A stretch of DNA of 64,000 nucleotides from Macrostomum lignano (lineage: Eukaryota), in assembly GCA_002269645.1 (NCBI GenBank), contig NIVC01001416.1, positions 1 through 64,000 on the forward strand, in the 5' to 3' direction. This document shows, one piece after another, positions 24,556-53,517 of this stretch (positions are counted from its first letter, which is position 1; each line of letters opens with the position of its first letter). Under the pieces are notes generated by a model. That model was not told the DNA's origin, ran no database searches, and was given only the letters and a program-made list of their open reading frames with translations. Made by a program: the position numbers and the translations under genes.

Positions 24556-26029
24556 CTACCAGAAACCGTACGAATAATAACACCTGTAGTCAGTGACAGC
24601 GGCCGTATTGTAATCTTCATCATCTTCGCATCTGCATGTCTTGAATTTGGCTCTCTTGGAATTGCAATGCCGCCAAGACTGCCAGCTGCTCCAGTCACTC
24701 CAGCGGCACGAGGGACCGGCTTGTCTTTGCCACCATTCTCGTGAACAGCTGTTTGACGAGCTCCTGATGCAGTCGTTGTAGGTGCGAGTCCTACTTCGCA
24801 AAATTTTATAGTTATATTTGCAGTCCTTGTACCAGTTGCCCCAGTTGCCCCACTCACACCAGGCAGTGAAGGCAGTGTCCGACTCGCTGCTTACCTCCGG
24901 GCCAGCCGACGCGCCGATTGGAGTGGAGCAGCCGCATTTGCGGACTCTCCTTCGAGTGAACTGCCGGTTGCATCCGGGATCGTAGTTGTTCGCGTAGTAC
25001 GAAGACTTCCTATAGCCTTTGTCACTCGTCCACTCGTTCCAGCCTTGCCAGTTGCACCAGTTCCAAGTCTTCGGGGAATAAGGACAATTAACAATATTTG
25101 CTATACTACTGAAAGTAGCCCTGTTTTTAAATAAAAATTAAATCCAGCAACACCTTAAAGCTTACATGGGTGATGTTATCAACCGCGGCCGTCTCGATGG
25201 TCTCAGGCGGCCTGTCAATCGGACAGCGGCAGCTCCTGGACCGGTGCCTGCTGTTCCAGTTTCCGCAGACCAGGCTGCCTTCGGACGAGTCGGTGGCCCA
25301 CTCGGACCACTGGCACCAGCTGATGAAGCTGCCCTGCGTCTGGCTTTTGTCCTTCGCACCCTGACACCAGCCGCTCACGGAGGCCCCTTCATCGGTTGGG
25401 CAGGTGCACTGGCGGACGCGGGTTCGATTCACAAGCGCGTTGCAGATGTCGGAATCTCCGGTCGCACCAGAGGCGGTGGCCCAGTTGGTCCAGGACTGCC
25501 AGGTGCAGATGTCTGAGCAGGAGAAGTCGGTGTGCTTTCATGAATCAAAGTATCCAGGAAACTGCTCGATTAAAGACCCACTCACCGTGGTACAGAGTGA
25601 CAGAAGACCCACTCACCGTGGTACAGAGTGACAGAAGACCCACTCACCGTGGTACAGAGTGACAGAAGATCCACTCACCGTGGTACAGAGTGACAGAGGA
25701 CCCACTCACCGTGGTACAGAGTGACAGAAGACCCACTCACCGTGGTACAGAGTGACAGAAGACCCACTCACCATGGTACAGAGTGACAGAAGACCCACTC
25801 ACCGTGGTACAGAGTGACAGAATGAGTGATAGCTGGCGTTCATCCCCACCGGACCCACCAGCTTGATGGAGCCAGGACTCAGCGCCACGGCTGAGACCGC
25901 GGACTCGTTGGGACCGCCGATTCCCGACGGCAGACGATCAGACGCGTTGAAGTTGAACTCCCTGACTGTGGAAGCGTCGGTCAGCCGTGCCGCAGTCAGG
26001 AGTAGTAAGGTCGCCACCGAGAGGCCCAT
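24556..26029 (-). pseudogene. PAN + TSR secreted protein, copy 1; ~171 nt of exon 1 (PAN cysteine core) deleted, giving a frameshift and early stop
   Basis: ATG at 26029; the sequence jumps from MNAS into the 31-bp repeat (SYHSFCHSVPR*); exons 25512-25166 and 25068-24556 remain open. Confidence 0.85.
25575..25820 (-). repeat. 31-bp splice-donor minisatellite, ~8 units (copy 1)
   Basis: acccactcaccgtggtacagagtgacagaag; the minus strand contains cacg|gtgagt. Confidence 0.95.
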
Positions 26030-26163
26030 CAGGCTGTGCTTGCTGAAGTTGCCGATTGCTGTGTTGCTGAGTGACAAAACTTTTCTCTTCTGCTTCTGGC
26101 CCGTCTCCCGCCCCGGGCTCAGCTGTTTTATGCACCGGCTTGATGCGTCTCTTTGTTTTGTTG

Positions 26164-26177
26164 GTTGCCATGGAAAC
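26164..26177. promoter_or_regulatory. Candidate RFX X-box upstream of PAN-TSR copy 1 (also at 43113-43126 for copy 2)
   Basis: GTTGCCATGGAAAC matches the 14-bp X-box consensus GTYNCYATRGNAAC and lies ~135 bp upstream of the ATG. Confidence 0.55.
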
Positions 26178-26578
26178 AGCGCTTTTGGGCGATTCCGTGG
26201 GCGGCTACGGAGGTGGGAGAAGCTAAATAAAAATTGCACAGGAATTCAGACGCTGTCAATGCGGAATGACTCTGAGAAGCCAGCATCCGTTATTTTCTGA
26301 TCGCAAATAGGGAAAAAATCCGCGAATCCATTCCAGACCATGTTTCCCATCAGGCATTCGACAAAATTTAGTCAGTTTTACCTGTTGCAGATCCGGGTTG
26401 CTGAAAAAACAGTACAGAATAAATTAGCACTCACCAAATAACGATTTATCCTGTCATCCCAGCTGGATCGCGTGTAAGCCTAGGTTCGGGAAAAATGTTC
26501 TAAAGATTCGTGCAGGTATTGTTACATGTGCATGCGGATTGAAACAAAAAATATGAGTATAAAAAACTAAATAACTTT

Positions 26579-26800
26579 TAGAGCGTCCGACTCACGACTT
26601 GAAGGTCGGAGGCTCGATTCCCGACTTTACTGGAACAATATGTGTCCTTGAGCAAGAGACAATTAACTCTGCATTGCTTCAGTTCACCCAGGTGTAAAAT
26701 GGGGGCTAGCATTAGCTGAGGTAATTGAGGGTGTGTGGCGAACCCCCAGTCCTTGGACTGAACAGCCGTACGCAGCCTTCAGCGGCGACGCCCCTGAAAC
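26579..26800 (+). mobile_element. tRNA-derived CORE-type SINE (5'-truncated)
   Basis: tRNA-like head agagcgtccgactcacgacttgaaggtcggaggctcgattccc followed by tgtgtccttgagcaagagacaattaactctgcattgcttcagttcacccaggtgtaaaatggg, resembling the MIR CORE domain. Confidence 0.75.
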
Positions 26801-29535: not shown

Positions 29536-30985
29536 CCCGTTCCTGACGGCTTGGCCCGAAATCGGGCCATAGAAATTTTTTTTCTTGCAATGCTCACACC
29601 TTGAAACAGATTTTCTGTTTCAAGCAAATATACATGGGTTCTGTCGCCAGTTTCGACTCTGATACTTCGTCGAGTCTGTATTCCACCGCTGATGAAACTT
29701 TCGAATGGTCTGAGGACGATGAGATGAACATCGCTGAGAACAACGAGCAAGCCGGTGGGTGGTACATGGTTCCACCGACTGAGAACAACAGGCCATCAGC
29801 CCTACCTGATTTTCTCGGAACACCTGGCATCCGACCAGACTGGCAGCCTCCACAAACTGCTGATGGAAACGAAGATGCTTTCCTAAAGCTATTTCTTTCC
29901 AGACCAGTTGTTCGAAGACCTCAGCAATTGGACAAACAGAGGCTGCACTGCCGAAGCAAGTGTTGAAATGGCGGGACTCAATGACGGATGAAGTTCGTAA
30001 GTTAGTGGGAATCGTGCTTTTGATGGGTGTCGACAAGAAGCCGGAAATCGCCAACTAGCTCGTACTGGTCAACCGATCCAGCGTTTCATTGCCCCCTTCT
30101 GGCCAAGCCATTCTCGCTCTCAAGAGACCGCTTCAAGCAGCTGCTGTCCTGCCTGTGTTTTTACAACTGCGCTGAAGCTTTAGGAGACGGCCCTCTGGCA
30201 AAGATGGAGCCCTTTCTGCACAGCGTAAAGCATCTGTGCAGCAACAATTACATGCCACGGCAGCGACTGTCGGTTGACGGGGCGGCAGGGGGTGTTCGTG
30301 TTAGAGATGGCGAGGATTCGCAATCAATCCAGGGACCCGGTCTCTCAGCTCCTAGACCTCAGTCCTAGCACAAACGCCCCTCGAAATAAAATAATATACT
30401 TTTTGCATTATCGTGGATAGAAATTACATTATTCCGTACTTAATTTGGAGTTATAATAAATTTATATGCTTTTTGTTTTTAGATTACCTGTTTCTTTCTA
30501 GTTTTCTAAAAGCTTTCTAAAATCAACTCCACAGAAAATGACGTGACAGCGTGACAATTGTGACAGCTTCCCTCCAGTTTCAACCAGTAAAGAAATGACC
30601 CCACTTCACTATGTTCTAGTATGACTTAAGTCGTTAACTTTTAAACAGAAGAAAAATATATGAATATTTGAAATTACTTTGTTTTGTTACAGTCTATCTT
30701 TTCTAAGTGCGTTTTCACTATCGCTTTTGACGCTCTAGATAAGACTTTAGACATTCAAAATAAGACTGCATAGGATCGCAAGCAAGGCCAGGCTAGCCAC
30801 GGCCAGAGCAAGCCCAGTCTTGGCTGCAGGAATGGCTTGGCCATAGACTAAAAAATGGAATATCAAAATGAGAATAAGACACTCAGACACTGAATGTCTA
30901 AAGTCTTATCTAGAGCGTCAAAAGCGATATCTTTCTTATTGGCCACTACTTGACCCGGTTTCGGGCCACATAAGTCCAGAACGGG
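29536..30985 (+). mobile_element. Internally deleted piggyBac-like element (5' part of the transposase retained)
   Basis: Ends cccgttc...gaacggg with shared tggcccgaa(a/t)(t/c)cggg subterminal motif; decayed PGBD N-terminus (FLKLFL, EVRKLVGIVLLMG, YWSTDP, LSRDRFKQLLSCLCF, MPRQRLSVD). Confidence 0.8.
30721..30927. mobile_element. ~207-bp MITE, ~36-bp TIR, TA flanks; present in unit 1 only
   Basis: tcgcttttgacgctctagataagactttagacattca ... tgaatgtctaaagtcttatctagagcgtcaaaagcga; absent from the unit 2 site near 44722. Confidence 0.75.
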
Positions 30986-33900
30986 TGTGCCAATTTTGCT
31001 GGTTTTTTGGCCATAGATATAACAAAAATTCCCCGTTGGGTTTGGGTGTTGAGGCATAACCCGAATTCGGGCCATCCGTCTGCTCATGGTTAACAAAGGC
31101 AACGCATCTGAACAATTGAACAATTTTTTCTCAGCAAAAGTCAGCAGAGCGAGGCCCCAGCAGTTTTTTCCGAGGACTAGCGACACGTATGTTAGCATGG
31201 AGCGGAGACTGAGAGAGGTTCAGTTCTCCCTGCAACTTTTCTTGTTGAAGCTTGTGCAGCAACTCATTAGACAAGCTGTGTGTATAGCTAAGCTACAGGA
31301 GCATTTTGGGCCTAGGAGCAGGGCCTCTTTGAATTACCTGCTGAAGCTTATTATTATATACTGAGGAAATTTGTCACGATACTGTGTTAAACAAGAAATC
31401 TTTCTTCGGTTTACCTGAGTTTGTATGCCAGCTACTAAACCTATTAGACTAAATTTTTGGAAGGTTCTATATATTCAAAGTTACCACCCCAGGCCCAGTC
31501 TTAAGAACATAATTCTTGTAGTTATAGTATTCGTATTTTATTATTAGTTGTCACTAGGTGGCACACAATTCAATGCGTTTACAATTCATCGATCGCATTG
31601 ATATTTTAAATGGTACTACATAATGACTGCGCATTGCTGGAACATGCAAGCCTTTTGTTCCACGTAACTATAGTTATTATTATTCCCATTCTAATATATA
31701 CAAGGCAATAGCCACTGCAGCTGCCCTTCCTGGAAACTGTATTACTGTATTAGTCCTAAACGTCAGCTATTTTTCCTGATGTACACCTGGTCTTTAATTC
31801 CTTTCGTCTATGTACACTAATACACTAATGTACACTAATGTACACTAATACACTAATACACTAATGTACACTAATGTACACTAATACACTAATACACTAG
31901 TACACTAGGTACGTCCTCGTACCTACTTACTCTTTCAAAACTTGCAGGACACAACTATACGCGTAGTGTACGTAGTTTACGTACGTGTGACGACTGCATG
32001 GCTTCCTCTGGTCTCTCAAAATGTACATGCCAACAATTCAATTCCTATGGAGAAGTCTAGAAAGCCAGCTGCCAGACCAATAGGGTTAGAATTGGTGACG
32101 CACGCATAGAGAGAACAATTAACATTTTAAAGACTTTTTCACAAGCAGCTCTCCTTATCTGCTTCAACAAAATTTTAAACTACATGCATGCCTGACATCG
32201 GCCCCCCTCTGACGCGAGGTTTAAAAAAGGCTTGTTATAACTGTTGCTTTTCAAATGCAATTGCTTTCCAATCACAATGGACTAAATCTCTAAGGTTTGT
32301 CTACAGCCTGAATGCCTGAACCGATTTTTTTCTAACTTGCTTTATTCAATTGCAAATTCTTGTGAGATTGTGTGGATTTAATTGTATTGAAAAATTCGAA
32401 TGGGAAGATGGCTAAATATTCGAAAAACGAGTTTTCCCAATGCTTTCAATTGGAGGCTAGAAAAGGTCAAAATCTTGACTAACTGAATAGCAATTCCAAT
32501 TAAGATTGCGCCACAACTTTTCTCTCTTCATTGTGTAGTAGGCCTCAGTACTGGATGCAGCAAGGGAGAGGAAAATAATGCTCAGTGGCGGCGTGTGTAC
32601 ATTCTGCTCTGGCTGACTGCATAGACAATTGCTATTTATAGATTTCACTCAATTTTGCATTGGCTCTGCCTGCACAACCTGTGCACACTGAGCAGCCTAT
32701 CACTGCTATGTATTTGACTGCAGTGCCGAAGCATTTATGGCTGATTTTTGCGCCCAGTAGACGGAATAGCCGCAGTGTAGGCACTAGGACTAGGTTTAGG
32801 CTAGGCGTAAGGTCCAAGGTTCGAGTCTGCCTCCTCGGCGGAGGATTAAAATTAAATTAATTTATTCATTTATAGCTTCGGGCTCAACTAATAGGAATAT
32901 TTTTGTTGAATTCGCAACGCACACTTAATGAATAATTTTTGCCATACAAAATTATTCAAATTTACTAAGCAAATTTGATTTGTAAAAAACTGCTTTGAGC
33001 ATTACTCATCGCATCAATGGGTATTGCCTAGCTCCATGAAAGTATCAAATTGCTAAGCTGCTAAATTTATTGTTAAAATGAAGGCTGAATTGTGAAAAAA
33101 CTGCCGATATGTATCGAAAATTGATTAGTGAACCGTAATAAATGCTGAGAAAAAATTAAGATTCTTGAAAGGATCCTTTATTTTTCAGTTTGCTGAGGAT
33201 ACTAAGGAGACGGCCGAGAGGAGAACTGCAGATGCTGAGGGGAACTGCAGATTGGCGAAAAGGTCATTCATGCAGACTGCAAAGGGGACAAACTGAAAAC
33301 TGCTGAGGTAGTTCCTCCAGACTTTTAAGCATATAGCTGAAAACTGCTGAGGGGAGCTGCTTGGAGGATTGGTAGACTTCTGAGCAAGACAACTCTCAGA
33401 GAGGATAGGATAGGAAGACATCAGTTTCAAAACTGTACAGTTTAAGTGATTAAGTGCAGGTTGTTTAGGGGATTACTGTGGACTGCTGAGTGAATTATTA
33501 TGGTTTGCTGACGGGACAGTTCTAGGCTGCTGAGGGGATAAATGCTTAATGTTAATGAAAGTTATAGACTGCAAGGGGATAACTCCAGGCTGCTAAGATA
33601 ATGACTGCAGTCTGTTTTGTGGGATTAGAAGGGATAATTTCAGGTTGTTGTGGGCATATCTCAGGAATTGCTGAGATGTCATGGCTTTTTGGGGCAATTT
33701 CTGAGATTTCAAGGCCCATGGGGAATTGCTGATATGCCATGGCTTACTGGAAGAATTGCTTGAATTGAGGTTTCAAAGGCTTATGGGGGGACTGCTGAGA
33801 TTGCTTTCTTTTGGGGGATGCTTGCTATTTAGGAATGAAGGTATTGCTTAATGCTGATTTGTGCAAAACACTGCCGATATGTATCGAAAATTGATTAGTG

Positions 33901-35080: not shown

Positions 35081-35722
35081 GCAGTCTGTATCAGTTTCAA
35101 TTAAAGTCAACATAGTTTCACAATCTAAATCTAGCTAGTCTCGTGCAATGCTTCCACGCAGAGTTACAATTCAGCTGTGACGCAATCTATTTCAGAATCA
35201 GCATTCAACCAGTCAGTTTTTTCTCTAGCACTCATACAATGCTTTTCAAGTCGAAAGTTCTGCTTGACCTTTACAAAAAGCATGGTTTTCGAAAATTTAA
35301 TGCCTTTAGCATCGAGCAATTTCTTAGGCAAGATGCATGTACCGAGACGCGGAAATTTCTTCCATTGGCTTCATGTAAAATAGCCGTATTGTCGTCGTTT
35401 AAGTGAACGCGTTGTCCGATTTTTTTTCAAATTTGCACCATTCGATCAGAAATTTTCGCGTCTCGGTACATGCATCTTGCCTAAGAAATTGCTCGATGCT
35501 AAAGGCATTAAATATTCGAAAAACATGCTTTTTTGTAAAGGTCAAGCAGAACTTTCGACGTGAAAAGCATTGTATGAATGCTAGAGAGAAAACTGACTGG
35601 TTGAATACTGAAATAGATTGCGTCACAGCTGAATTGTAATTCTGCGTGGAAGCATTGCACGAGACTAGCTAGATTTAGATTGCGTAACTATGTTGACTTT
35701 AATTGAAACTGATACAGACTGC
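35081..35722. mobile_element. Foldback MITE, ~275-bp TIRs and ~90-bp spacer; second copy in the opposite orientation at 49287-49930
   Basis: gcagtctgtatcagtttcaattaaagtcaac ... gttgactttaattgaaactgatacagactgc; no TSD recognised. Confidence 0.8.
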
Positions 35723-35984
35723 CCGAGAAATTGATTATGTAATAACTGCTATGCTTGGAGCATTAAAAGTTTGAAATTTATATATAAGTTATAAAATTCA
35801 TGTTACCATAACGATGCGAGCTAGCTTACATGTGAACAGACTGAACTGCAAATGCAGCGACGTGGGTTCGAAATTTTAGAGTCTAGAGATTTTTATTAAA
35901 TTTTTTAACGTCAAGAAATCTAAAGAAACTTTAAAAAGCGCCGGATTAAAAACAAGAAGCGTCATGTAATTCATAAAAATAATC

Positions 35985-38297
35985 TCAAAGCAGATCTTCA
36001 ATAATCTCATAGTAGCTCTCCAATAATCTCATAGCAGCTCTCAAACAGTCTCATAGCAGCTTTGCAATAATCTCATAGCATCTTTTTAACAATCTCATAA
36101 CAGCTCTTCAATAATCTCATAGCAGCTTTGCAATAATCTCATAAAAGCTCTTCAATAATTTCATAGCAGCGCTTCAATAATCTCATAGCAGCTCTTAAAT
36201 AATCCCATAGCAGCTTTGAAATATTCTCATAGCAGTTCTTCAATAATCTCACAGCCGCTTTGCAATAATCTCATATCAGCTTTGCAATATTCTTATAGCA
36301 GCTTTGCAAAAATCTCATAGCAGCTCTTCCATAATCTCATAGCAGCTCTTCAATAATCCCATAGCAGCTTTTAAGTATTCTTACAGCAGCTCTTCAATAA
36401 TCTCATAGTAGCTCTCAAATAATCTCATTGTAGCTCTTTAATAATCTCATTGTAGCTCTTTAATAATCTCATAGCAGCTCTCCAATAATCTCATAGAAGC
36501 TCTTCAAAAATCTCATAGCAGCTGTCAAACAGTCTCATAGCAGCTTTGCAATAATCTCATAGCAGCTTAGTAATATTCTTATAGCAGCTTTGCAATAATC
36601 TCATAGCAGCTCTTCCATAATCTCATAGCAGCTTTGCAATATTCTCATAGCAGTTCTTCAATAATCTCACAGCCGCTTTGCAATAATCTCATAGCAGCTT
36701 TGCAATAATCTCATAGCATCTTTTTAACAATCTCATAACAGCTCTTCAATAATCTCATAGCAGCTTTGCAATAATCTCATAAAAGCTCTTCAATAATCTC
36801 ATAGCAGCGCTTCAATAATCTCATAGCAGCTCTTAAATAATCCCAAAGCAGCTTTGAAATATTCTCATAGCAGTTCTTCAATAATCTCACAGCCGCTTTG
36901 CAATAATCTCATATCAGCTTTGCAATATTCTTATAGCAGCTTTGCAAAAATCTCATAGCAGCTCTTCCATAATCCCATAGCAGCTTTTAAGTATTCTTAC
37001 AGCAGCTCTTCAATAATCTCATAGCAGCTCTTCCATAATCCCATAGCAGCTTTGAAATATTCTCATAGCAGTTCTTCAATAATCTCACAGCCGCTTTGCA
37101 ATAATCGCATATCAGCTTTGCAATATTCTTATAGCAGCTTTGCAAAAATCTCATAGCAGCTCTTCCATAATCCCATAGCAGCTTTTAAGTATTCTTACAG
37201 CAGCTCTTCAATAATCTCATAGTAGCTCTCAAATAATCTCATTGTAGCTCTTTAATAATCTCATAGCAGCTCTCCAATAATCTCATAGAAGCTCTTCAAA
37301 AATCTCATAGCAGCTGTCAAACAGTCTCATAGCAGCTTTGCAATAATCTCATAGCAGCTTAGCAATATTCTTATAGCAGCTTTGCAATAATCTGATAGCA
37401 GCTCTTCAATAAGCTCATAGCAGCTCTTCAATAATCCCATAGCAGCTCTTAAATAATCTTATAGCGGCTTTGCAATAATTTCATAGCAGCTCTTCCATAA
37501 TCTCATAGCAATAATCTCATAGCAGCTTTGCAATAATCTGATAGCAGCTTTGCAATAATCTGATAGCAGCTTTACAATAATCTCATAGCAGCTTTGAAAT
37601 ATTCTTATAGCAGCTCTTCAAAAATCTCAATGCAGCTTTGCAATAATCTCATAGAAGCTCTTCAATAATCTCATAGCAGCTCTTCAATAATCTCATAGTA
37701 GCTCTCAAATAATCTCATAGCAGCTTTGAAATATTATCATAGCAGCTCTTCAATAATCTCATAGCAGCTCTTCAATAATCTCATAGCAGCTCTTCAATAA
37801 TCTCAATGCAGCTCTTCAATAATCTCATAGCAGCTTTGCAATATTCTCATAGCAGCTCTTCAATAGCCTCATAGTAGCTCTTAAAAATCTCATAGCAGCT
37901 CTTCAATAATCTCATAGCAGCTTTGAAATAATCTAATAGCATCTTTGCAATATTCTCATAGCAGCTCTTCAGTAGTCTCATAGTAGCTCTTAAAAATCTC
38001 ATAGCAGCTTTCAAATAATCTCATAGTAGCTCTTTAAAATCTCATAGTAGCTTTCAAATAATCTCATAGTAGTTCTTTAAAATCTCATAGTAGCTTTCAA
38101 ATAATCTCATAGTAGCTCTTTAAAATCTCATAGTAGCTTTCAAATAATCTCATAGTAGCTCTTTAAAATCTCATAGTAGCTTTCAAATAATCTCATAGTA
38201 GCTCTCAAATAATTTCATAGCAGCTCTTCCATAATCTCATAGCAATAATCTCATAGCAGCTCTGCAATAATGTCACAACAGCTTTGCAATAATCTCT
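35985..38297. repeat. 22-bp satellite (caataatctcatagcagctctt/ttg), ~100 units with recurring higher-order blocks
   Basis: Direct reading; diagnostic variant units recur (gcatcttttt at ~36078 and ~36716; cagctgtcaaacagtctc at ~36518 and ~37311). Confidence 0.97.
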
Positions 38298-40067: not shown

Positions 40068-42978
40068 CTACCAGAAACCGTACGAATAATAACACCTGTA
40101 GTCAGTGACAGCTGCCGTATTGTAATCTTCATCATCTTCGCATCTGCATGTCTTGAATTTGGCTCTCTTGGAATTGCAATGCCGCCAAGACTGCCAGCTG
40201 CTCCAGTCACTCCAGCGGCACGAGGGACCGGCTTCTCTTTGCCACCAGTCTCGTGAACAGCTGTTTGACGAGCTCCTGATGCAGTCGTTGTAGGTGCGAG
40301 TCCTACTTCGCACAATTTTATAATTATATCTGCAGTCCTTGTACCAGTTGCCCCAGTTGCCCCAGTCACACCAGGCAGTGTAGGCAGTGTCCGACTCGCT
40401 GCTCACCTCCGGGCCAGCCGACGCGCTGATTGGAGTGGAGCAGCCGCATTTTCGGACTCTCCTGCGAGTGAACTGCCTGTTGCATCCGGGATCGTAGTTG
40501 TTCGCGTAGTACGAAGACTTCCTATAGCCTTTGTCACTCGTCCACTCGTTCCAGCCTTGCCAGTTGCACCAGTTCCAAGTCTTCGGGGAATAAGGACAAT
40601 TAACAATATTGGCTTTATCCTACTGAAAGTAGCCCTGTTGCATTTTTAAATGAAAATTAAATCCAGCAACACCTTAAAGCTTACCTGGGTGATGTTATCA
40701 ACCGCGGCCGTCTCGATGGTCTCAGGCGGCCTGTCAATCGGGCAGCGGCAGATCCTGGACCGGTGCCTGCTGTTCCAGTTTCTGCAGACCCGGCTGCCTT
40801 CGGACGAGTCGGTGGCCCACTCGGACCACTGGCACCAGCTGATGAAGCTGCCCTGCGTCTGGCTTTTGTCCTTCGCTCCCTGACACCAGCCGCTCACGGA
40901 GGCCCCTTCGTCAGTGGGGCAGGTGCACTGGCGGACGCGGGTTCGATTCACAAGCGCGTTGCAGATGTCGGAATCTCCGGTCGCACCAGAGGCGGTGGCC
41001 CAGTTGGTCCAGGACTGCCAGGTGCAGATGTCTGAGCAGGAGAAGTCGGTGTGCTTTCATGAATCAAAGTATACAGGAAACTGCTCGATTAAAGACCCAC
41101 TCACCGTGGTACAGAGTGACAGAAGACCCACTCGCCGTGGTACAGAGTGACAGAAGACCCACTCACCGTGGTACAGAGTGACAGAAGACCCACTCACCGT
41201 GGTACAGAGTGACAGAAGACCCACTCGCCGTGGTACAGAGTGACAGAAGACCCACTCAATGTGTTACAGAGTGACAGAAGAACCACTCAATGTGTTACAG
41301 AGTGATAGTGTAGAGATCTCCAGAGGCATTACATGCAGACTACTGTAAGTAGTAACATAAAAATGCGAAAAACTTGAATGTTGTAAAAACTGCAAATTGT
41401 CATACTCTATTTTTAAAGACCACGAAAGCAACAAATGACCATCTTTTGCAACACTTAAATTTAGAACTCCGAATATGGTATTGACGCTCAAACCTAATGT
41501 ATTCCATAGGGGCCAAATTTCCAAAGCGCTAAACTGTCACCTACTAAAAATAAGCTGTTTCTCAAGAATTTTTCCTATAAATACAAGCCAAAATCCGAGC
41601 TAAAAATCTCAGACTCGGAGCAGCCTCTAAAGATCTTGGAGCTTGCTGGAACAGCTAAACGAGGCTACATCTCTGAGAGAGAAGTAAACCAATTGGTGAG
41701 CCGTTGCTCGAGCCTTTGTTATTGATTTTGAGAGCGATTTATTGCCGGCCGCTACTGTCCAGTCGATTTGACTGAGTTCATTGAATTTGAGGCCTCCCAT
41801 TTTCCTAAAGGATTGGATAGGATCTGCGGACCGATTCCGATACCCTTAGAGGATTATCGATTGATTGATTTTGGTTATCCTAGATTAACCGATAGGAGCA
41901 CACGACTCCGATTCCGTTAGATCTAGAAGAAGACGCCCCTCTTGGAGGTCCTCGTGATTATTACAGAAAGTTGCTTTTATTATAAGGGCGCATCGTTGAT
42001 ATTGATTACTGAGCTTAAGGCCTATATTGATTTGCATTCGAGAAATACTGCGACGTCGCCTGATTTGATCGTCACGCTCTCATTCGGCCGATTCGAGTCT
42101 CCAAGAAGATTCCTCCGGAGAAGAAGAAGAAGAAGAAGAATTGAAGAAACGAGCTCAGAGAACCTGCACTACACAGAAGAGGAGCCCGCGACAGTAAGTG
42201 ATCACTTTATTTTGTTTCCAGGCTTAGGGTCTGGAAGTGGGAGTTTTCGGGAGACTGATCACCTCCCGAATCAACTCTTCAATAGAAGACCCACTCACTG
42301 TGTTACAGAGTGACAGAAGAACCACTCACCGTGGTACAGAGTGATAGAAGACCCACTCACCGTGGTACAGAGTGACAGAAGACCCACTCACTGTGTTACA
42401 GAGTGACAGAAGAACCACTCACTGTGGTACAGAGTGACAGAAGAACCACTCACCGTGGTACAGAGTGATAGAAGACCCACTCACCGTGGTACAGAGTGAT
42501 AGAAGACCCACTCACCGTGGTACAGAGTGACAGAAGACCCACTCACCATGGTACAGAGTGACAGAAGACCCACTCACCGTGGTACAGAGTGACAGAAGAC
42601 CCACTCACCGTGGTACAGCTTGACGAAGGCGGCTTCCCCAGCCGTGCCGTTGCCAGTCCAGTAGGTCTCGAACTGTCCCTGGTCAGCCAGGTGGCACAGG
42701 CCCGCACTGGCATTGAAGTAGTACGCGTGGCAGAAAGCCCACGCCCTGCACTTGGTCGCGCACTGGAGACTCCCCAGCAAGCTGGCGTTCATCCCCACCG
42801 GACCCACCAGCTTGATGGAGCCCGGACTCAGCGCCACGGCTGAGACCGCGGACTCGTTGGGGCCGCCGATTCCCGGTGGCAGACGATCAGACGCGTTGAA
42901 GTTGAACTCCCTGACTGTGGAAGCGTCGGTCAGCCGTGCCGCAGTCAGGAGTACTAAGGTCGCCACCGAGAGGCCCAT
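40068..42978 (-). CDS. Secreted PAN/apple + five TSP1-like (WxxWxxW) repeat protein, copy 2, intact, 409 aa; exons 42978-42609, 41031-40685, 40580-40068
   Basis: Signal peptide MGLSVATLVLLTAARLTDA; PAN-like QCATKCRAWAFCHAYYFNASAGLCHL; modules WQSWTNW..RTRVRQC, WCQWSEW..RHRSRIC, WCNWQGWNEW..RRRVRKC, WCDWGNWGNW..RSRTRT and WSDWSSWQSW..KFKTC. GT-AG junctions have phases 1 and 0, and exon lengths 370+347+513 keep the frame. Confidence 0.88.
41094..42617 (-). repeat. 31-bp splice-donor minisatellite of copy 2 (~7 + ~11 units), split by a solo LTR
   Basis: Units at 41094-41308 and 42282-42617. Confidence 0.93.
41309..42281 (+). mobile_element. Solo LTR, 973 bp, Gypsy-like (4-bp TSD ATAG)
   Basis: TGTAGAG ... 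CTCTTCA termini (6/7 inverted); atag at 41305-08 and 42282-85; TATAAATA at ~41576; absent from the other two arrays. Confidence 0.85.
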
Positions 42979-43547
42979 CAGGCTGTGCTTGCTGAAGTTG
43001 CCGATTGCTGTGTTGCTGAGTGACAAAACTTTTCTCTTCTGCTTCTGGCCCGTCTCCCGCCCCGGGCTCAGCTGTTTTATGCACCGGCTTGATGCGTCTC
43101 TTTGTTTTGTTGGTTGCCATGGAAACAGCGCTTTTGGGCGATTCCGTGGGCGGCTACGGAGGTGGGAGAAGCTGAATAAAAATTGCACAGGAATTCAGAC
43201 GCTGTCAATGCGGAATGACTCCGAGAAGCCAGCATCCGTTATTTTCTGATCGCAAATAGGGAAAAAATCCGCGAATCCATTCCAGACCATGTTTCCCATC
43301 AGGCATTCGACAAAATTTAGTCAGTTTTACCTGTTGCAGATCCGGGTTGCTGAAAAAACAGTACAGAATAAATTAGCACTCACCAAATAACGATTTATCC
43401 TGTCATCCCAGCTGGATCGCGTGTAAGCCTAGGTTCGGGAAAAATGTTCTAAAGATTCGTGCAGGTATTGTTACATGTGCATGCGGATTGAAACAAAAAA
43501 TATGAGTATAAAAAACTAAATAACTTTTAGAGCGTCCGACTCACGAC

Positions 43548-44240
43548 TTGAAGGTCGGAGGCTCGATTCCCGACTTTACTGGAACAATATGTGTCCTTGA
43601 GCAAGAGACACTGCGTTTTTACAACTGCGCTGAGGCTTTAGGAGATGGGCCTCTGGCAAAGATGGAGCCCTTTCTGCACAGCGTAAAGCATCTGTGCAAT
43701 TACATGCCACGGCAGCGACTGTCGGTTGATGAGACACTCGTTTTGTACAAGGGCAGAGTTGCTTTTAAACAGTACATTCCAACAAAGAAAAGTAAATATG
43801 GAATTAAAATGTCTTGTATCTGTGAGAGTGAGAGTGCGTACTTATGGAACTTCATCGTCCACACATTCCCTGAGGTCAATAATCAGTTCGGTGAAGGCCT
43901 CGGGTGTCAGGACTTGACGATGAGTGCGAAGGTTGTTGCAGAACTGTGCCGCGGTTTGCTGTATCTTGGACACCACGTCTTCACCGACCGTTGGTTTACG
44001 TCTCAGCGGCTGGCTACTTGGCTGCTGCAGCATGATACACTGCTAACCGGGATAGTACGGAAAACCGCGGTATCCCAGCTGAACTGCAAGCTGCCAACCT
44101 ACATCCGACTTCACCTGGTTACAGATAGTCCAGAAATTGTCCTGGTTACAGAAACTACTAATATGGGACGTAGGAATCAGAAAACAGTAGAAGAGGGTAG
44201 GGTCATGAGCACAGGGGTAGAGGTGAGGGAATTACAATAG
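43548..44240 (+). pseudogene. piggyBac transposase core fragment fused in frame to a SINE remnant
   Basis: LSVDETLVLYKGR..QYIPTKKSKYGIK (first catalytic D) and HVFTDRWFTS (second D); the N-terminal ~20 codons come from the SINE (43529-43610); the third D region is missing; element end gaacggg at 44776. Confidence 0.88.
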
Positions 44241-47200
44241 GAAGGGGCGGATTCGCAGAGTGATAACCGCAGGCGCAGAGACGGGGCGGCAGGGAGTGTT
44301 AGTGTTAGAGATGGCGAGGATTCGCAATCAATCCAGGGACCCGGTCTCTCAGCTCCTAGACCTCAGTCCTAGCACCAACGCCCCTCGAAATAAAATAATA
44401 TATTTGTTGCATTATCGTGGATAGAAATTACATTATTCCGTACTTAATTTGGAGTTATAATAAATTTATATGCTTTTTGTTTTTAGATTATCCGTTTCTT
44501 TCTAGTTTTCTAAAAGCTTTCTAAAATCAACTCCACAGAAAATGACGTGACAGCGTGACAATTGTGACAGCTTCCCTCCAGTTTTGACCAGTAAAGAAAT
44601 GACCCCACTTCACTATGTTCTAATATAACTTAAGTCGTTAACTTTTAAACAGAAGAAAAATATATGAATATTTGAAATTACTTTGTTTTGTTACAGTCTA
44701 TCTTTTCTAAGTGCGTTTTCACCATCTTATTGGCCACTACTTGACCCGGTTTCGGGCCACATAAGTCCAGAACGGGTGTGCCAATTTTGCTGGTTTTTTG
44801 GCCATAGATATAACAAAAATTCCCCGTTGGGTTTGGGTGTTGAGGCATAACCCGAATTCGGGCCATCCGTCTGCTCATGGTTAACAAAGGCAACGCATCT
44901 GAACAATTGAACAATTTTTTCTCAGCAAAAGTCAGCAGAGCGAGGCCCCAGCAGTTTTTTCCGAGGACTAGCGACACGTATGTTAGCATGGAGCGGAGAC
45001 TGAGAGAGGTTCAGTTCTCCCTGCAACTTTTCTTGTTGAAGCTTGTGCAGCAACTCATTAGACAAGCTGTGTGTATAGCTAAGCTACAGGAGCATTTTGG
45101 GCCTAGGAGCAGGGCCTCTTTGAATTACCTGCTGAAGCTTATTATTATATACTGAGGAAATTTGTCACGATACTGTGTTAAACAAGAAATCTTTCTTCGG
45201 TTTACCTGAGTTTGTATGCCAGCTACTAAACCTATTAGACTAAAGTTTTTGGAAGGTTCTATATATTCAAAGTTACCACCCCAGGCCCAGTCTTAAGAAC
45301 ATAATTCTTGTAGTTATAGTATTCGTATTTTATTATTAGTTGTCACTAGGTGGCACACAATTCAATGCGTTTACAATTCATCGATCGCATTGATATTTTA
45401 AATGGTACTACATAATGACTGCGCATTGCTGGAACATGCAAGCCTTTTGTTCCACGTAACTATAGTTATTATTATTCCCATTCTAATATATACAAGGCAA
45501 TAGCCACTGCAGCTGCCCTTCCTGGAAACTGTATTACTGTATTAGTCCTAAACGTCAGCTATTTTTCCTGATGTACACCTGGTCTTTAATTCCTTTCGTC
45601 TATGTACACTAATACACTAATGTACACTAATGTACACTAATACACTAATACACTAATGTACACTAATGTACACTAATACACTAATACACTAGTACACTAG
45701 GTACGTCCTCGTACCTACTTACTCTTTCAAAACTTGCAGGACACAACTATACGCGTAGTGTACGTAGTTTACGTACGTGTGACGACTGCATGGCTTCCTC
45801 TGGTCTCTCAAAATGTACATGCCAACAATTCAATTCCTATGGAGAAGTCTAGAAAGCCAGCTGCCAGACCAATAGGGTTAGAATTGGTGACGCACGCATA
45901 GAGAGAACAATTAACATTTTAAAGACTTTTTCACAAGCAGCTCTCCTTATCTGCTTCAACAAAATTTTAAACTACATGCATGCCTGACATCGGCCCCCCT
46001 CTGACGCGAGGTTTAAAAAAGGCTTGTTATAACTGTTGCTTTTCAAATGCAATTGCTTTCCAATCACAATGGACTAAATCTCTAAGGTTTGTCTACAGCC
46101 TGAATGCCTGAACCGATTTTTTTCTAACTTGCTTTATTCAATTGCAAATTCTTGTGAGATTGTGTGGATTTAATTGTATTGAAAAATTCGAATGGGAAGA
46201 TGGCTAAATATTCGAAAAACGAGTTTTCCCAATGCTTTCAATTGGAGGCTAGAAAAGGTCAAAATCTTGACTAACTGAATAGCAATTCCAATTAAGATTG
46301 CGCCACAACTTTTCTCTCTTCATTGTGTAGTAGGCCTCAGTACTGGATGCAGCAAGGGAGAGGAAAATAATGCTCAGTGGCGGCGTGTGTACATTCTGCT
46401 CTGGCTGACTGCATAGACAATTGCTATTTATAGATTTCACTCAATTTTGCATTGGCTCTGCCTGCACAACCTGTGCACACTGAGCAGCCTATCACTGCTA
46501 TGTATTTGACTGCAGTGCCGAAGCATTTATGGCTGATTTTTGCGCCCAGTAGACGGAATAGCCGCAGTGTAGGCACTAGGACTAGGTTTAGGCTAGGCGT
46601 AAGGTCCAAGGTTCGAGTCTGCCTCCTCGGCGGAGGATTAAAATTAAATTAATTTATTCATTTATAGCTTCGGGCTCAACTAATAGGAATATTTTTGTTG
46701 AATTCGCAACGCACACTTAATGAATAATTTTTGCCATACAAAATTATTCAAATTTACTAAGCAAATTTGATTTGTAAAAAACTGCTTTGAGCATTACTCA
46801 TCGCATCAATGGGTATTGCCTAGCTCCATGAAAGTATCAAATTGCTAAGCTGCTAAATTTATTGTTAAAATGAAGGCTGAATTGTGAAAAAACTGCCGAT
46901 ATGTATCGAAAATTGATTAGTGAACCGTAATAAATGCTGAGAAAAAATTAAGATTCTTGAAAGGATCCTTTATTTTTCAGTTTGCTGAGGATACTAAGGA
47001 GACGGCCGAGAGGAGAACTGCAGATGCTGAGGGGAACTGCAGATTGGCGAAAAGGTCATTCATGCAGACTGCAAAGGGGACAAACTGAAAACTGCTGAGG
47101 TAGTTCCTCCAGACTTTTAAGCATATAGCTGAAAACTGCTGAGGGGAGCTGCTTGGAGGATTGGTAGACTTCTGAGCAAGACAACTCTCAGAGAGGATAG

Positions 47201-48954
47201 GATAGGAAGACATCAGTTTCAAAACTGTACAGTTTAAGTGATTAAGTGCAGGTTGTTTAGGGGATTACTGTGGACTGCTGAGTGAATTATTATGGTTTGC
47301 TGACGGGACAGTTCTAGGCTGCTGAGGGGATAAATGCTTAATGTTAATGAAAGTTATAGACTGCAAGGGGATAACTCCAGGCTGCTAAGATAATGACTGC
47401 AGTCTGTTTTGTGGGATTAGAAGGGATAATTTCAGGTTGTTGTGGGCATATCTCAGGAATTGCTGAGATGTCATGGCTTTTTGGGGCAATTTCTGAGATT
47501 TCAAGGCCCATGGGGAATTGCTGATATGCCATGGCTTACTGGAAGAATTGCTTGAATTGAGGTTTCAAAGGCTTATGGGGGGACTGCTGAGATTGCTTTC
47601 TTTTGGGGGATGCTTGCTATTTAGGAATGAAGGTATTGCTTAATGCTGATTTGTGCAAAACACTGCCGATATGTATCGAAAATTGATTAGTGAACCGTAC
47701 TACATTGTGAGCAAATTTTTATTGTTGAAAATATCTTTGCAGTTTGCTAAGCAGGATACTGAGGAGCCGGCCGACAGAAGAACTGCAGATTGTCAAAAGG
47801 TTCATTGCAGACTGCAAAGGGGACAAACTACAAACTGCTAAGGTAGTTCCTCCAGACATATAGATCATATCGTCTGGAGGATCATATCATAGATGTAAAG
47901 ATGTGAGATGTGCAGACGGAGTTCCTCCAGACCATATTCTTTGCTCTTTTATCTTTGCTCCCGACTTATGAGCGTATAGCTGCAAACTGCTGAGGTGGTA
48001 ACTGTGGACTACTGTGACTGCTGAGTAAATTATTGTTTACTGTGGGGACAATCCTAGGCCGCTAGAGTATGACTGAAGCCTGTTTTTTGGGATTGGAAGG
48101 GATAATTTCAGGTTGTTGTGGAGACATCTCAGGAATTTCTGAGATGTCAAGGCTTATTGGTTGATTTGCTGAGATTTCATGGCTTTTTTGGGATAATTTC
48201 TGAGATTTCAAGGCTCATGGGAATTGCTCAGATGTCAAGGCTTACTGGGGTAATTGCTGAGATGTCAAGGCTTACTGGGGGAATTGCTGAGATGTCAAGG
48301 CTCGAGTTTAATTGCTGCGATGTCGATGCTTACTGAGGGAATTTCTGAGATGTCAAGGCCTACTGGGGGAATTGCTGAGATGTCAAGGCTCATGAGGATG
48401 GCTGAATTGTTGAGATATCAAGGCTCATGGGGGATGGCTGAATTGTTGGGGGGGAGGGGGTTAGGTTGTTGAGCGATTGTCAGATCGTCAAGTAGTACGG
48501 CTCAAGTAGCTCATTTAATTCAGATAGTAAAAAGTACACACAAGTGATGCTGAATTCTGCTGGTAGGAAATACCAGCGTATTTATTAAAGGTTTGATTCT
48601 TTGAGTTAGGCTAATAAAGAGGGGGTCAAAGGCCGTCAGGGATTGGCATATTGAGCTCCTGCTGCGGACCAGAGTATGCCCAGGCCAATGACGATATGCA
48701 CTAAGAGTTTGTGCTTGAAAGGATAAGCACTATTTGCTGATTGAAAAAGGGTTTTGGGCTAATGAAAGAAACTTTTTTGCTGGTGAAAGTTTTGATTCAT
48801 AGCAATTTATTTTTTTCAAAATGCGGAAAAGTAATTTTTGATTAATTGAAATGAAAAATAATGGTTACTGTTGGGCCAAAATAAAGACCACCTGGTGTCA
48901 TTTTAAAGCCCCCCAGCGGGGGGCTAAATGGCTAGTCAGATATACTAAAAATGA

Positions 48955-50216
48955 ATGAGACTGTTTGAGAGCTGCTATGAGATTATTGGAGAGCTACTAT
49001 GAGATTATTGATGATCTGCTTTGAGATTATTTTTATGAATTACATGACGCTTCTTGTTTTTAATCCGGCGCTTTTTAAAGTTTCTTTAGATTTCTTGACG
49101 TTAAAAAATTTAATAAAAATCTCTAGACTCTAAAATTTCGAACCCACGTCGCTGCATTTGCAGTTCAGTCTGTTCACCTGTAAGCTAGCTCACATCGTTA
49201 TGGTAACATGAATTTTATAACTTATATATAAATTTCAAACTTTTAATGCTCCAAGCATAGCAGTTATTACATAATCAATTTCTCGGGCAGTCTGTATCAG
49301 TTTCAATTAAAGTCAACATAGTTACGCAATCTAAATCTAGCTAGTCTCGTGCAATGCTTCCACGCAGAATTACAATTCAGCTGTGACGCAATCTATTTCA
49401 GCATTCAACCAGTCAGTTTTCTCTCTAGCATTGATACAATGCTTTTTACGTCGAAAGTTCTGCTTGACCTTTACAAAAAATCATGTTTTTCGAATATTTA
49501 ATGCCTTTAGCATCGAGCAATTTCTTAGCCAAGATGCATGTACCGAGACGCGAAAATTTCTGATCGAATGGTGCAAATTTGAAAAAAAAATCGGACAACG
49601 CGTTCGCTTAAACGACGACAAGACGGCTATTTTACATGAAGCCAATTGAAGAAATTTCCGCGTCTCGGTACATGCATCTTGCCTAAGAAATTGCTCGATG
49701 CTAAAGGCATTAAATATTCGAAAAACATGCTTTTTTGTAAAGGTCAAGCAGAACTTTCGACTTGAAAAGCATTGTATGAGTGCTAGAGAAAAAACTGACT
49801 GGTTGAATGCTGATTCTGAAATAGATTGCGTCACAGCTGAATTGTAACTCTGCGTGGAAGCATTGCACGAGACTAGCTAGATTTAGATTGCGAAACTATG
49901 TTGACTTTAATTGAAACTGATACAGACTGCATATGTATATATCTCATATATATGCAGTCTGTCTGTACCATAACGATGTGAGCTAGCTTACATGTGAACA
50001 GACTGAACTGCAAATGCAGCGACGTGGGTTCGAAATTTTAGAGTCTAGAGATTTTTATTAAATTTTTTAACGTCAAGAAATCTAAAGAAACTTTAAAAAG
50101 CGCCGGATTAAAAACAAGAAGCGTCATGTAATTCATAAAAATAATCTCAAAGCAGATCTTCAATAATCTCATAGTAGCTCTCCAATAATCTCATAGCAGC
50201 TCTCAAACAGTCTCAT
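48955..50216. repeat. Nested inverted duplication: outer arms 48955-49205 / 49966-50216 around the foldback MITE
   Basis: The left arm is the reverse complement of the satellite start and its flank; both arms carry gatgtgagc where unit 1 has gatgcgagc. Confidence 0.85.
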
Positions 50217-50893
50217 AGCAGCTTTGCAATAATCTCATAGCATCTTTTTAACAATCTCATAACAGCTCTTCAATAATCTCATAGCAGCTTTGCAATAATC
50301 TCATAAAAGCTCTTCAATAATTTCATAGCAGCGCTTCAATAATCTCATAGCAGCTCTTAAATAATCCCATAGCAGCTTTGAAATATTCTCATAGCAGTTC
50401 TTCAATAATCTCACAGCCGCTTTGCAATAATCTCATATCAGCTTTGCAATATTCTTATAGCAGCTTTGCAAAAATCTCATAGCAGCTCTTCCATAATCTC
50501 ATAGCAGCTCTTAAATAATTCCATAGCAGCTTTTAAGTATTCTTACAGCAGCTCTTCAATAATCTCATAGTAGCTCTCAAATAATCTCATTGTAGCTCTT
50601 TAATAATCTCATAGCAGCTCTCCAATAATCTCATAGAAGCTCTTCAAAAATCTCATAGCAGCTGTCAAACAGTCTCATAGCAGCTTTGCAATAATCTCAT
50701 AGCAGCTTAGCAATATTCTTATAGCAGCTTTGCAATAATCTGATAGCAGCTCTTCAGTAAGCTCATAGCAGCTCTTCAATAATCCCATAGCAGCTCTTAA
50801 ATAATCTTATAGCGGCTTTGCAATAATTTCATAGCAGCTCTTCCATAATCTCATAGCAATAATCTCATAGCAGCTTTGCAATAATCTGATAGC
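50145..50893. repeat. 22-bp satellite, unit 2 copy (~34 units), truncated at the unit 2/3 junction
   Basis: Same order of variant units as the start of the 36-kb array. Confidence 0.95.
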
Positions 50894-51428
50894 AAAAAGG
50901 TATTCTATTCTTATAAATAGTAGAGTCACTACTGTCTAGAGTTGAAGCTGAAATAGTAACCGTATTAAAAAATAGCGTTTTCTGGTTGTTAAACATATCT
51001 CGGTGGCGAGTTGGGCAAACTTTTTTACCACAAGGGCCAGATAAAGAATCCAGCTCGGGGCTGATTAAAAGCAGATTAAAAGAGAAAAGAGGAGAGATGG
51101 GAGGGAGGATGGGGAGAGAGGAGAGGGGAGAGAGGAGAAGAGAGAGGGGATAGAGGGGAGGAGAGAGAAGAGAGAGGAGAGCTGAGAAGAGAAACAAGCC
51201 TTGAGCGGGCCGAATTGCTATTGTGAAGTTTCAAAGTAACTGACTGCCGGATAGAGAGGCTTCGGGGGCCGCATGTGGCCCGTGGGACGGAGTCTGGTGA
51301 CCCCTGTCTTAAAATATAATAATAATTATGGCATGATCTATCATAGACTGGGAAAAGTAATTCTACTGCAGATGTCAGAGTTTATATACGCGATTTTGCG
51401 ACTAAAATGTAATGTGGCTTTACGAAAG

Positions 51429-53517
51429 CTACCAGAAACCGTACGAATAATAACACCTGTAGTCAGTGACAGCGGCCGTATTGTAATCTTCATCATCTTC
51501 GCATCTGCATGTCTTGAATTTGGCTCTCTTGGAATTGCAATGCCGCCAAGACTGCCAGCTGCTCCAGTCACTCCAGCGGCACGAGGGACCGGCTTCTCTT
51601 TGCCACCAGTCTCGTGAACAGCTGTTTGACGAGCTCCTGATGCAGTCGTTGTAGGTGCGAGTCCTACTTCGCACAATTTTATAATTATATCTGCAGTCCT
51701 TGTACCAGTTGCCCCAGTTGCCCCAGTCACACCAGGCAGTGTAGGCAGTGTCCGACTCGCTGCTCACCTCCGGGCCAGCCGACGCGCTGATTGGAGTGGA
51801 GCAGCCGCATTTGCGGACTCTCCTTCGAGTGAACTGCCGGTTGCATCCGGGATCGTAGTTGTTCGCGTAGTACCAAGACTTCCTATAGCCTTTGTCACTC
51901 GTCCACTCGTTCCAGCCTTGCCAGTTGCACCAGTTCCAAGTCTTCGGGGAATAAGGACAATTAACAATATTGGCTTTATCCTACTGAAAGTAGCCCTGTT
52001 GCATTTTTAAATAAAAATTAAATCCAGCAACACCTTAAAGCTTACCTGGGTGATGTTATCAACCGCGGCCGTCTCGATGGTCTCAGGCGGCCTGTCAATC
52101 GGGCAGCGGCAGCTCCTGGACCGGTGCCTGCTGTTCCAGTTCCCGCAGACCAGGCTGCCTTCGGACGAGTCGGTGGCCCACTCAGACCACTGGCACCAGC
52201 TGATGAAGCTGCCCTGCGTCTGGCTTTTGTCCTTCGCGCCCTGACACTAGCCGCTCACGGAGGCCCCTTCGTCAGTGGGGCAGGTGCACTGGCGGACGCG
52301 GGTTCGATTCACAAGCGCGTTGCAGATGTCGGAATCTCCGGTCGCACCAGAGGCGGTGGCCCAGTTGGTCCAGGACTGCCAGGTGCAGATGTCTGAGCAG
52401 GAGAAGTCGGTGTGCTTTCATGAATCAAAGTATACAGGAAACTGCTCGATTAAAGACCCACTCACCGTGGTACAGAGTGACAGAAGACCCACTCGCCGTG
52501 GTACAGAGTGACAGAAGACCCACTCACCGTGGTACAGAGTGACAGAAGACCCACTCGCCGTGGTACAGAGTGACAGAAGACCCACTCACCGTGGTACAGA
52601 GTGACAGAAGACCCACTCACCGTGGTACAGAGTGACAGAAGACCCACTCAATGTGTTACAGAGTGACAGAAGAACCACTCACCGTGGTAAAGAGTGACAG
52701 AAGATTCACTCAGCCTGGTACAGAGTGACAGAAGACCCACTCAATGTGTTACAGAGTGACAGAAGAACCACTCACCGTGGTAAAGAGGGACAGAAGATCC
52801 ACTCACCGTGGTACAGAGTGACAGAAGACCCACTCACCGTGGTACAGAGTGACAGAAGATCCACTCACCGTGGTACAGAGTGACAGAAGACCCACTCACC
52901 GTGGTACAGAGTGACAGAAGACCCACTCACCGTGGTACAGAGTGACAGAAGACCCACTCACCGTGGTACAGAGTGACAGAAGGCTTACTCACCGTGGTAC
53001 AGAGTGACAGAAGACCCACTCACCGTGGTACAGAGTGACAGAAGACCCACTCACCGTGGTACAGAGTGACAGAAGACCCACTCACCGTGGTACAGAGTGA
53101 CAGAAGACCCACTCACCGTGGTACAGAGTGACAGAAGACCCACTCACCGTGGTACAGCTTGACGAAGGCGGCTTCCCCAGCCGTGCCGTTGCCAGTCCAG
53201 TAGGTCTCGAACTGTCCCTGGTCAGCCAGGTGGCACAGGCCCGCACTGGCATTGAAGTAGTACGCGTGGCAGAAAGCCCACGCCCTGCACTTGGTCGCGC
53301 ACTGGAGACTCCCCAGCCAGCTGGCGTTCATCCCCACCGGACCCACCAGCTTGATGGAGCCAGGACTCAGCGCCACGGCTGAGACCGCGGACTCGTTGGG
53401 GCCGCCGATTCCCGACGGCAGACGATCAGACGCGTTGAAGTTGAACTCCCTGACTGTGGAAGCGTCGGTCAGCCGTGCCGCAGTCAGGAGTAGTAAGGTC
53501 GCCACCGAGAGGCCCAT
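51429..53517 (-). pseudogene. PAN + TSR secreted protein, copy 3; nonsense codon in exon 2; exons 53517-53148, 52392-52046, 51941-51429
   Basis: ctgacactagcc versus ctgacaccagcc in the other copies = TGG>TAG at 52247-52249; the rest is open. Confidence 0.85.
52455..53157 (-). repeat. 31-bp splice-donor minisatellite, ~22 units (copy 3)
   Basis: Direct reading. Confidence 0.95.

Follow-up and report, generated by a model that had tools for sequence, protein, structure and literature searches.

Tandem copies, one intact and two disabled, of a gene for a putative secreted PAN and Trp-ladder protein in Macrostomum lignano

Introduction

Structures of thrombospondin type 1 repeats (TSRs) are defined by a geometry in which a Trp at every third residue of one strand faces alternate Arg residues on the next strand. 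Apicomplexan microneme adhesins employ this module (MIC2/TRAP), as well as the apple domain (MIC4), for extracellular adhesion. At the level of gene structure, the human interferon-induced gene 6-16 (IFI6) carries a minisatellite that provides multiple splice donors. Here we describe a locus of the free-living flatworm Macrostomum lignano that can be compared with all of these, a cluster of three copies of a gene whose predicted product combines a PAN/apple module with five Trp-rich modules, and whose first splice junction has been turned into a minisatellite. The stretch analysed, referred to below as the window, comprises the first 64 kb of the 147-kb contig NIVC01001416.1 of assembly Mlig_3_7 (GCA_002269645.1, NIVC00000000), on which a Kazal-type ORF of the window has the same coordinates (16860-17309).

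The interpretation that we favour, with a probability of about 0.6, is that this is a real lineage-restricted M. lignano gene that has undergone tandem segmental duplication, where the middle copy (copy 2) encodes a secreted protein of PAN and divergent TSR modules, and copies 1 and 3 are recent pseudogenes.

Results

The tandem array

Self-BLAST of the window reveals three tandem units, at 24042-~38300, 39484-~50900 and 50881-~54160, each of which carries the same three-exon gene, on the minus strand in all three. The duplication units measure ~15.5 and ~11.4 kb, and each is terminated by a 22-bp satellite. The original prediction had placed three tandem copies, one of them intact and the other two disabled independently, between 24556 and 53517. 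These limits coincide with the gene itself, the former being the final base of the copy 1 stop codon and the latter the A of the copy 3 ATG, and the units, the open frame of copy 2 and the separate lesions of copies 1 and 3 bear out the triplication. The proposal of a family in birth-and-death evolution is likewise in keeping with two pseudogenes beside one intact tandem copy. The elements of the array are as follows.

24556..26029, minus strand: copy 1, pseudogene; exon 2 at 25512-25166, exon 3 at 25068-24556
40068..42978, minus strand: copy 2, intact gene; three exons, 1230 nt, 409 aa
51429..53517, minus strand: copy 3, pseudogene; exon 1 at 53517-53148, exon 2 at 52392-52046, exon 3 at 51941-51429
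42979..43610 (26030-26661 in copy 1), minus strand: upstream/promoter region common to copies 1 and 2, 0-0.4% divergence; copy 3 is without it beyond 88 bp
44725..48303 (30934-34516 in unit 1), no strand: spacer block of the duplication unit, substitution divergence 0.28%; no gene recognised
35978..38296, no strand: 22-bp satellite (AATAATCTCATAGCAGCTCTTC) closing unit 1, ~105 units
50140-50895, no strand: counterpart of this satellite closing unit 2, ~33 units

Directly after the unit 1 satellite is a 53-bp repeat of 7.5 units (38296-38692), and beside the same satellite lies a 1-kb segment (35059-36054) that is inverted in unit 2 (49953-48955). A piggyBac transposase fragment (43548-44240, plus strand; DDE_Tnp_1_7, E 8e-25) is found directly upstream of copy 2. 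The region upstream of copy 1 at 29601-30368 (plus strand) shares sequence with this fragment, and contains an open reading frame (ORF) at 29601-29966 that has no Pfam match.

The intact copy and its predicted product

Copy 2 has no frame-disrupting change across its 1230 nt, and all its splice sites are consensus GT-AG. Its parts are listed below, with a slash marking the splice junction.

42978-42609, minus strand: exon 1, from the ATG to donor CACG/GTGAGT, phase 1; encodes signal peptide, linker and PAN module
42609..42846, minus strand: PAN/apple-coding part of exon 1, approximately aa 45-123; core Cys C73, C77, C83 and C95
42608-41032, minus strand: intron 1
41031-40685, minus strand: exon 2, acceptor ctcctgctcag/, donor CCCAG/GTAAGC; modules 1-2
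40684-40581, minus strand: intron 2
40580-40068, minus strand: exon 3, acceptor ttattccccgaag/; modules 3-5 and stop

The product contains 26 Cys, 26 Trp, 13 WxxW motifs and 7 NxS/T sequons. Residues 1-19 form its sole hydrophobic maximum and are predicted to be a signal peptide (MGLSVATLVLLTAARLTDA/S), with a predicted cleavage site (T-D-A/S) that obeys the -3/-1 rule. A scan of the product for hydrophobic segments found no transmembrane (TM) segment, and the C-terminus is not hydrophobic and shows no sign of a glycosylphosphatidylinositol signal. The copy 2 model agrees in length and features with the 409-aa spliced product first proposed, which had a signal peptide, a PAN module, five Trp-ladder modules, sequons and no TM segment.

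A model of 422 aa, made by use of an upstream NAGNAG-type acceptor (cagtag/GAT at 40619), was considered and rejected. It would introduce an odd 27th Cys, and its extra 39 nt are disrupted in copy 1 by a 2-nt indel. The 409-aa model is preferred because its Cys count is even and because the indel falls within those 39 nt.

The PAN module

The N-terminal module of the copy 2 product is a sub-threshold match to Pfam PAN_1 (PF00024), with 17.4 bits against a gathering cutoff of 21.4 (E 0.004, aa 72-104). A phmmer search through all of the 1.84 billion cluster representatives matched only three proteins, all of them through aa 44-107. The best is DgyrCDS14473 of the annelid Dimorphilus gyrociliatus, a protein of ~20 PAN repeats (E 3.6e-36), followed at E 1.8e-12 by A0A1I8IQU1, a WSC-domain protein of M. 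lignano, and at E 6.2e-12 by P0003, a related sequence. In both of the proteins that were scanned, the matched stretches correspond to Pfam PAN_1 (E 2.7e-144 for DgyrCDS14473 and 9.4e-29 for A0A1I8IQU1). Over 42 aa, 38% of the residues are identical to the PAN units of A0A1I8IQU1, and the four core Cys line up. These Cys (C73, C77, C83 and C95), which follow the pattern of a helix CxxxC plus two strand Cys, also align with those of the apple domain of Toxoplasma MIC4, which gives the segment its best sequence match in the PDB (E 0.07). The PAN module of the original prediction is real, given phmmer matches of E 3.6e-36 to 6e-12 to true PAN_1-repeat proteins, and we accept the assignment as well supported.

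Five Trp-ladder modules

The remainder of the product contains five modules of ~35-60 aa each, with the consensus CxWxxWxxW(xxW)...C...RxRxRxCxC. In the five-module alignment the W6, W9, W12, R, C and C columns are invariant. Each module has four Cys. CSxTCG is absent from all five, as the first reading of the sequence had noted. All five show the Trp/Arg spacing of the TSR geometry, and they lack the six-Cys pattern and the CSxTCG O-fucosylation motif.

When the modules were used for a profile search of the PDB, the top eight matches were all TSR proteins (among them ADAMTS-5, E 0.088, properdin and BAI1), none being significant. Ten canonical TSRs gathered from PDB alignments then served as the target for hhalign. 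The Trp ladder, the central Cys and the RxRxC segment align in register (P 2.4e-4, probability 44%). A rerun gave a score of 22.9 (P 7e-5), against 9.2 +/- 2.4 (maximum 19.4) in 200 column shuffles and 16.9 for the reversed alignment. Over both runs the hhalign probability is 44-64%. On this basis the modules are probably highly divergent, shortened TSRs, and we do not file them as members of PF00090.

A minisatellite made from the first splice junction

Intron 1 opens with a 31-bp minisatellite, the unit of which (CTGTACCACG/GTGAGTGGGTCTTCTGTCACT) consists of the last 10 nt of exon 1 and the first 21 nt of intron 1. As the unit spans the exon 1/intron 1 junction, every unit repeats the strong 5' splice site CACG/GTGAGT. 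The original prediction mentioned neither this array nor the insertion within it, the truncated upstream region of copy 3 or the mosaic divergence described below. The blocks are distributed over the copies as follows.

42284..42618, minus strand: copy 2, 5' block, 11 units
41092..41305, minus strand: copy 2, 3' block, 7 units
25573..25822, minus strand: copy 1, 8 units, with the end of the exon 1 deletion inside
52453..53157, minus strand: copy 3, 23 units

Since 31 is not a multiple of three and a stop is met in each frame, only the first donor gives a productive mRNA, and the extra donors are a plausible source of mis-splicing. Selective protection of the reiterated donors was considered and rejected, as variation among the units is not lower at donor positions, the GT included. 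In copy 2 the minisatellite is divided within intron 1 by a ~950-bp insertion (41306-42283), which shows no transposon hallmarks in the form of terminal inverted repeats or a recognisable ORF, and occurs only once in the window.

Two independently disabled copies

What remains of exon 1 in copy 1 (26029-25831) corresponds to nt 1-199 only, i.e. codons 1-66. At the breakpoint (25831/25830) this remnant is joined directly to the intronic 31-bp array, so that 171 nt of PAN-coding sequence and the authentic donor are deleted. The first remaining donor (25802) is in phase 2; exon 2 needs phase 1, and splicing from it would thus be out of frame, while all donors after it are preceded by a stop. The exons of copy 3 are free of gaps, and exon 2 is interrupted by a TGG to TAG change at 52249-52247, which turns W172 (codon 172) into a stop. 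The change is a simple base substitution and does not reflect a homopolymer error. Homology of copy 3 to the other copies ends at 53605, 88 bp upstream of its ATG.

Selection and exchange between the copies

By the Nei-Gojobori method, the ratio of non-synonymous to synonymous divergence (dN/dS) is 0.25 for copies 1 and 2, 0.24 for copies 1 and 3 and 0.21 for copies 2 and 3, with synonymous divergence (dS) of 0.035-0.065 among the copy pairs. Every pair shows significantly fewer non-synonymous changes than expected (Fisher p 4e-4, 2.6e-3 and 2.3e-3, respectively). All Cys are kept across the copies, and the sole Trp change is that of W172, the copy 3 stop. Ratios of 0.21-0.25 in all pairs indicate that purifying selection acted on the frame during most of the period after the copies separated. 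Judged from this substitution pattern, the reading frame is real coding sequence and not a chance ORF. The residue changes between copies 1 and 2 that had been listed from the sequence (F/Y, E/D, K/R, L/V, Q/E, G/S, L/R, G/R and S/I) are all present, and L9V, S35P and H239Q can be added to them; with dN/dS of 0.21-0.25, however, they do not point to diversification.

Divergence between units 1 and 2 is mosaic. It is 0.37% in the promoter region and 0.28% in the 3.6-kb spacer block, compared with 2.5-3% in the transcribed region (24056-25512 versus 39568-41031). Sites at which one of the three copies is the odd one out cluster along the gene. Together, the mosaic divergence and the clustering point to sequence exchange between the copies rather than a simple two-step duplication, and suggest gene conversion or unequal exchange.

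Other features in the window

Some 7 kb from the cluster are two intron-less ORFs in head to head orientation, at 16860-17309 (plus strand) and 17914-18327 (minus strand), both with a hydrophobic N-terminal segment and Kazal-like Cys spacing. The former has approximately three Kazal-like units (Pfam Kazal_1, E 2.2e-6); the latter has no significant Pfam match. An ORF at 21184-22254 (plus strand) is a remnant of a P-element/THAP9-like transposase (Pfam TNP-like_GBD, E 3.6e-8). Near the end of the window, an exon-like ORF at 63172-63567 (plus strand) matches DUF4517 (the C20orf27 family, E 2.8e-21), and probably represents exon 1 of a conserved metazoan gene extending past the end of the window.

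A 413-bp inverted repeat (57431-57843 and 58051-58463, 97% identity, ~200-bp spacer) is probably a foldback or long terminal inverted repeat element. Further tandem arrays are found at 1373-1851 (~18-bp period) and 9786-10494 (~30-bp period), both periods being judged from self-BLAST offsets only, and at 14564-14781 and 22764-23035. Such arrays are typical of the repeat-rich M. lignano genome. Scans of the window with Rfam and for tRNA genes were negative.

Discussion

A predicted extracellular binding protein

If the favoured interpretation is correct, the copy 2 product would be a secreted, disulfide-rich and, by prediction, N-glycosylated protein. It would consist of a cleavable signal peptide (~1-19), a linker of ~25 aa, the PAN module (~45-123) and the five four-Cys modules. 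In each of these modules the Trp side chains of one strand would interleave with the Arg of the neighbouring strand, the stack being pinned by two disulfides and not three. Such a protein could function in extracellular binding, with the PAN module engaging a glycan or protein ligand, and the basic Trp/Arg ladders forming a rod, whose WxxW motifs may be C-mannosylated, that binds anionic glycans or matrix. A role in adhesion, mucus or gamete recognition may be imagined, as may C-mannosylation itself. Copy 1 would have been disabled by a deletion through the splice-donor minisatellite, and copy 3 by a nonsense substitution together with loss of the upstream region, in what appears to be ordinary birth-and-death turnover under overall purifying selection.

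Weighing the interpretation

A number of observations weigh against this interpretation. The full product has no identical or similar protein in collections of 5.8 or 15 billion proteins, transcript-derived and UniProt M. lignano sets included; with the UniProt proteome of M. lignano covered in this way, the gene lacks an annotation in it, which does not show it to be silent. Productive splicing of copy 2 is assumed, across an intron 1 whose start repeats one strong donor 11 times in tandem, and which contains the ~950-bp insertion. The tandem arrangement is known from one redundant assembly only. At the level of the modules, neither the whole protein nor single modules match Pfam TSP_1 (PF00090) or any other TSP1-type family at E≤10, and all of the TSR similarities fall below conventional significance. 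AlphaFold models the full-length protein, with no alignment, at a predicted local distance difference test score (pLDDT) of 32.6. When the internal repeats serve as an alignment, module 2 reaches a pLDDT of 60.5 and shows two strands only, at the W and R segments. Foldseek comparison of the module 2 model with the PDB finds no TSR or other meaningful match.

The module results leave room for a different reading, which we consider possible but not probable, that the modules are not TSR homologues, and constitute an independent Trp/Cys/Arg-rich repeat, convergent or of novel fold, that shares the WxxW and RxR spacing. In addition to the missing Pfam match and the poor model, four Cys in place of six, the lack of CSxTCG and an hhalign probability of only 44-64% are what such a repeat would show. 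Sequence searches agree: 5.8 billion proteins contain no match to the full-length protein or the five-module profile and, at E≤10, none to the TSR-like region, and phmmer finds no relative of the modules among the 1.84 billion representatives. Convergence would nevertheless have to reproduce the layered-core rule of TSRs, with three to four Trp at i, i+3, and ~15-25 residues on three alternate basic residues followed by Cys, in five of five modules. It would also have to produce a register-specific hhalign score above that of all 200 shuffles and the reversed control, and PDB profile matches that are all TSRs at the top. The TSR homology of the original prediction is weakly supported by the in-register alignment and the TSR-only PDB ranks, and lacks a Pfam or sequence match.

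A second alternative concerns the fate of the family rather than the nature of its modules. Copy 2 could itself be non-functional or silent, its open frame being left over from recent constraint, in a cluster that is decaying as a whole. Two of the three copies are already dead, and in copy 2 the insertion and the 18 reiterated donors of intron 1, of which the first alone keeps the frame, burden a gene that has no canonical AATAAA after its stop (only a TATAAA at +43) and no matching protein in the searched collections, the UniProt M. lignano proteome included. We regard general decay as unlikely, however, since copy 2 has not a single frame-disrupting change in 1230 nt and has consensus splice sites throughout, and since dN/dS is ~0.2 in every pair, those with copy 2 included. 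Introns of ~1 kb are, moreover, average in M. lignano (PMC5730564).

More ambitiously, the modules may represent a new, macrostomid-restricted class of four-Cys 'mini-TSR' without the O-fucosylation motif, fused to PAN in an expressed secreted protein with a lineage-specific recognition task (for example in gland secretion, egg/sperm interaction or substrate binding). The number of donor repeats would in that case throttle productive splicing, and the array would be a hotspot for copy-killing deletions. This we put forward as a doubtful extension of the secreted PAN and divergent TSR interpretation.

Finally, the DV1 line of M. lignano carries extra large chromosomes, and the assembly itself has to be considered as a source of the three copies. 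The genome paper (PMC5730564) describes Mlig_3_7 as over half repetitive, with 15% tandem and simple repeats, and reports duplicated non-repetitive blocks (≥95% identity) that total 180 Mb. Any triplication has to be judged against this background. One example of such redundancy is the end of contig NIVC01001680.1 (296304-301544) in the same assembly, which overlaps the window at 14860-~20100 at ~99.8%, carries the Kazal gene as well and stops short of the cluster. It is decidedly improbable that the copies are alleles or homeologues of a one- or two-copy locus that the PacBio assembly joined in error, even though the unit borders lie in satellites, typical places of mis-joins, because the copies differ structurally and not by single-nucleotide variants alone (different lesions; 8, 18 and 23 minisatellite units; a 3.6-kb insertion versus a 0.67-kb upstream stretch; the inverted 1-kb segment; satellites of 2.3 versus 0.75 kb), and identity varies from 94.7 to 99.6% along the unit. 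Structural and mosaic differences of this kind fit real paralogues that exchange sequence better than stacked haplotigs.

Significance

If copy 2 is expressed, M. lignano, a model flatworm whose gland secretions (adhesive, seminal and eggshell) are under active research, would gain a secreted protein that its annotation lacks, and this protein would provide a case of the thrombospondin Trp/Arg ladder pared down to two disulfides, with no CSxTCG and the geometric signature kept. A search of the literature on Macrostomum with thrombospondin, PAN or seminal fluid turned up only adhesion papers, on the giant Mlig-ap1/ap2. The locus illustrates gene birth and death on a small scale, with a minisatellite made from a splice junction marking the deletion breakpoint. 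Current understanding is not overturned, tandem lineage-specific secreted families and redundant blocks being common in this genome. The novelty is modest: these are known extracellular module types in a lineage-restricted combination, with no recognisable full-length relatives in the searched databases.

Comparison with known systems

In its PAN module, the copy 2 product has the same core, CxxxCxxxxxC...F/Y-x-F/Y-N...GLC-x-L, as the PAN units of A0A1I8IQU1 and DgyrCDS14473. It differs from these relatives in having a single PAN and no array, and no WSC or SUEL lectin partner. The resemblance to the microneme adhesins, which use the same two module types, is one of architecture only: homology is not significant, and the predicted protein comes from a metazoan and has no TM segment, cytoplasmic tail or vWA domain. 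At the gene level, IFI6 and the copies described here both have a tandem repeat across an exon/intron boundary in which each unit carries a 5' splice site. Unlike in IFI6, the unit here is 31 nt, and later donors shift the frame or meet a stop, so that in-frame isoforms are not possible.

The closest comparison for the five modules is with the TSRs of thrombospondin-1 (TSR2/3), properdin, ADAMTS-5 and BAI1. The modules are shorter and have four Cys (CxW...C...CxC) instead of six, and, being without CSxTCG, they have no site for O-fucosylation by POFUT2, unlike TSRs. Both occur in tandem arrays in secreted proteins and carry WxxW motifs of the C-mannosylation type (by prediction in the modules), and both follow the same order, a WxxWxxW ladder, then RxRxR, and then directly a Cys.

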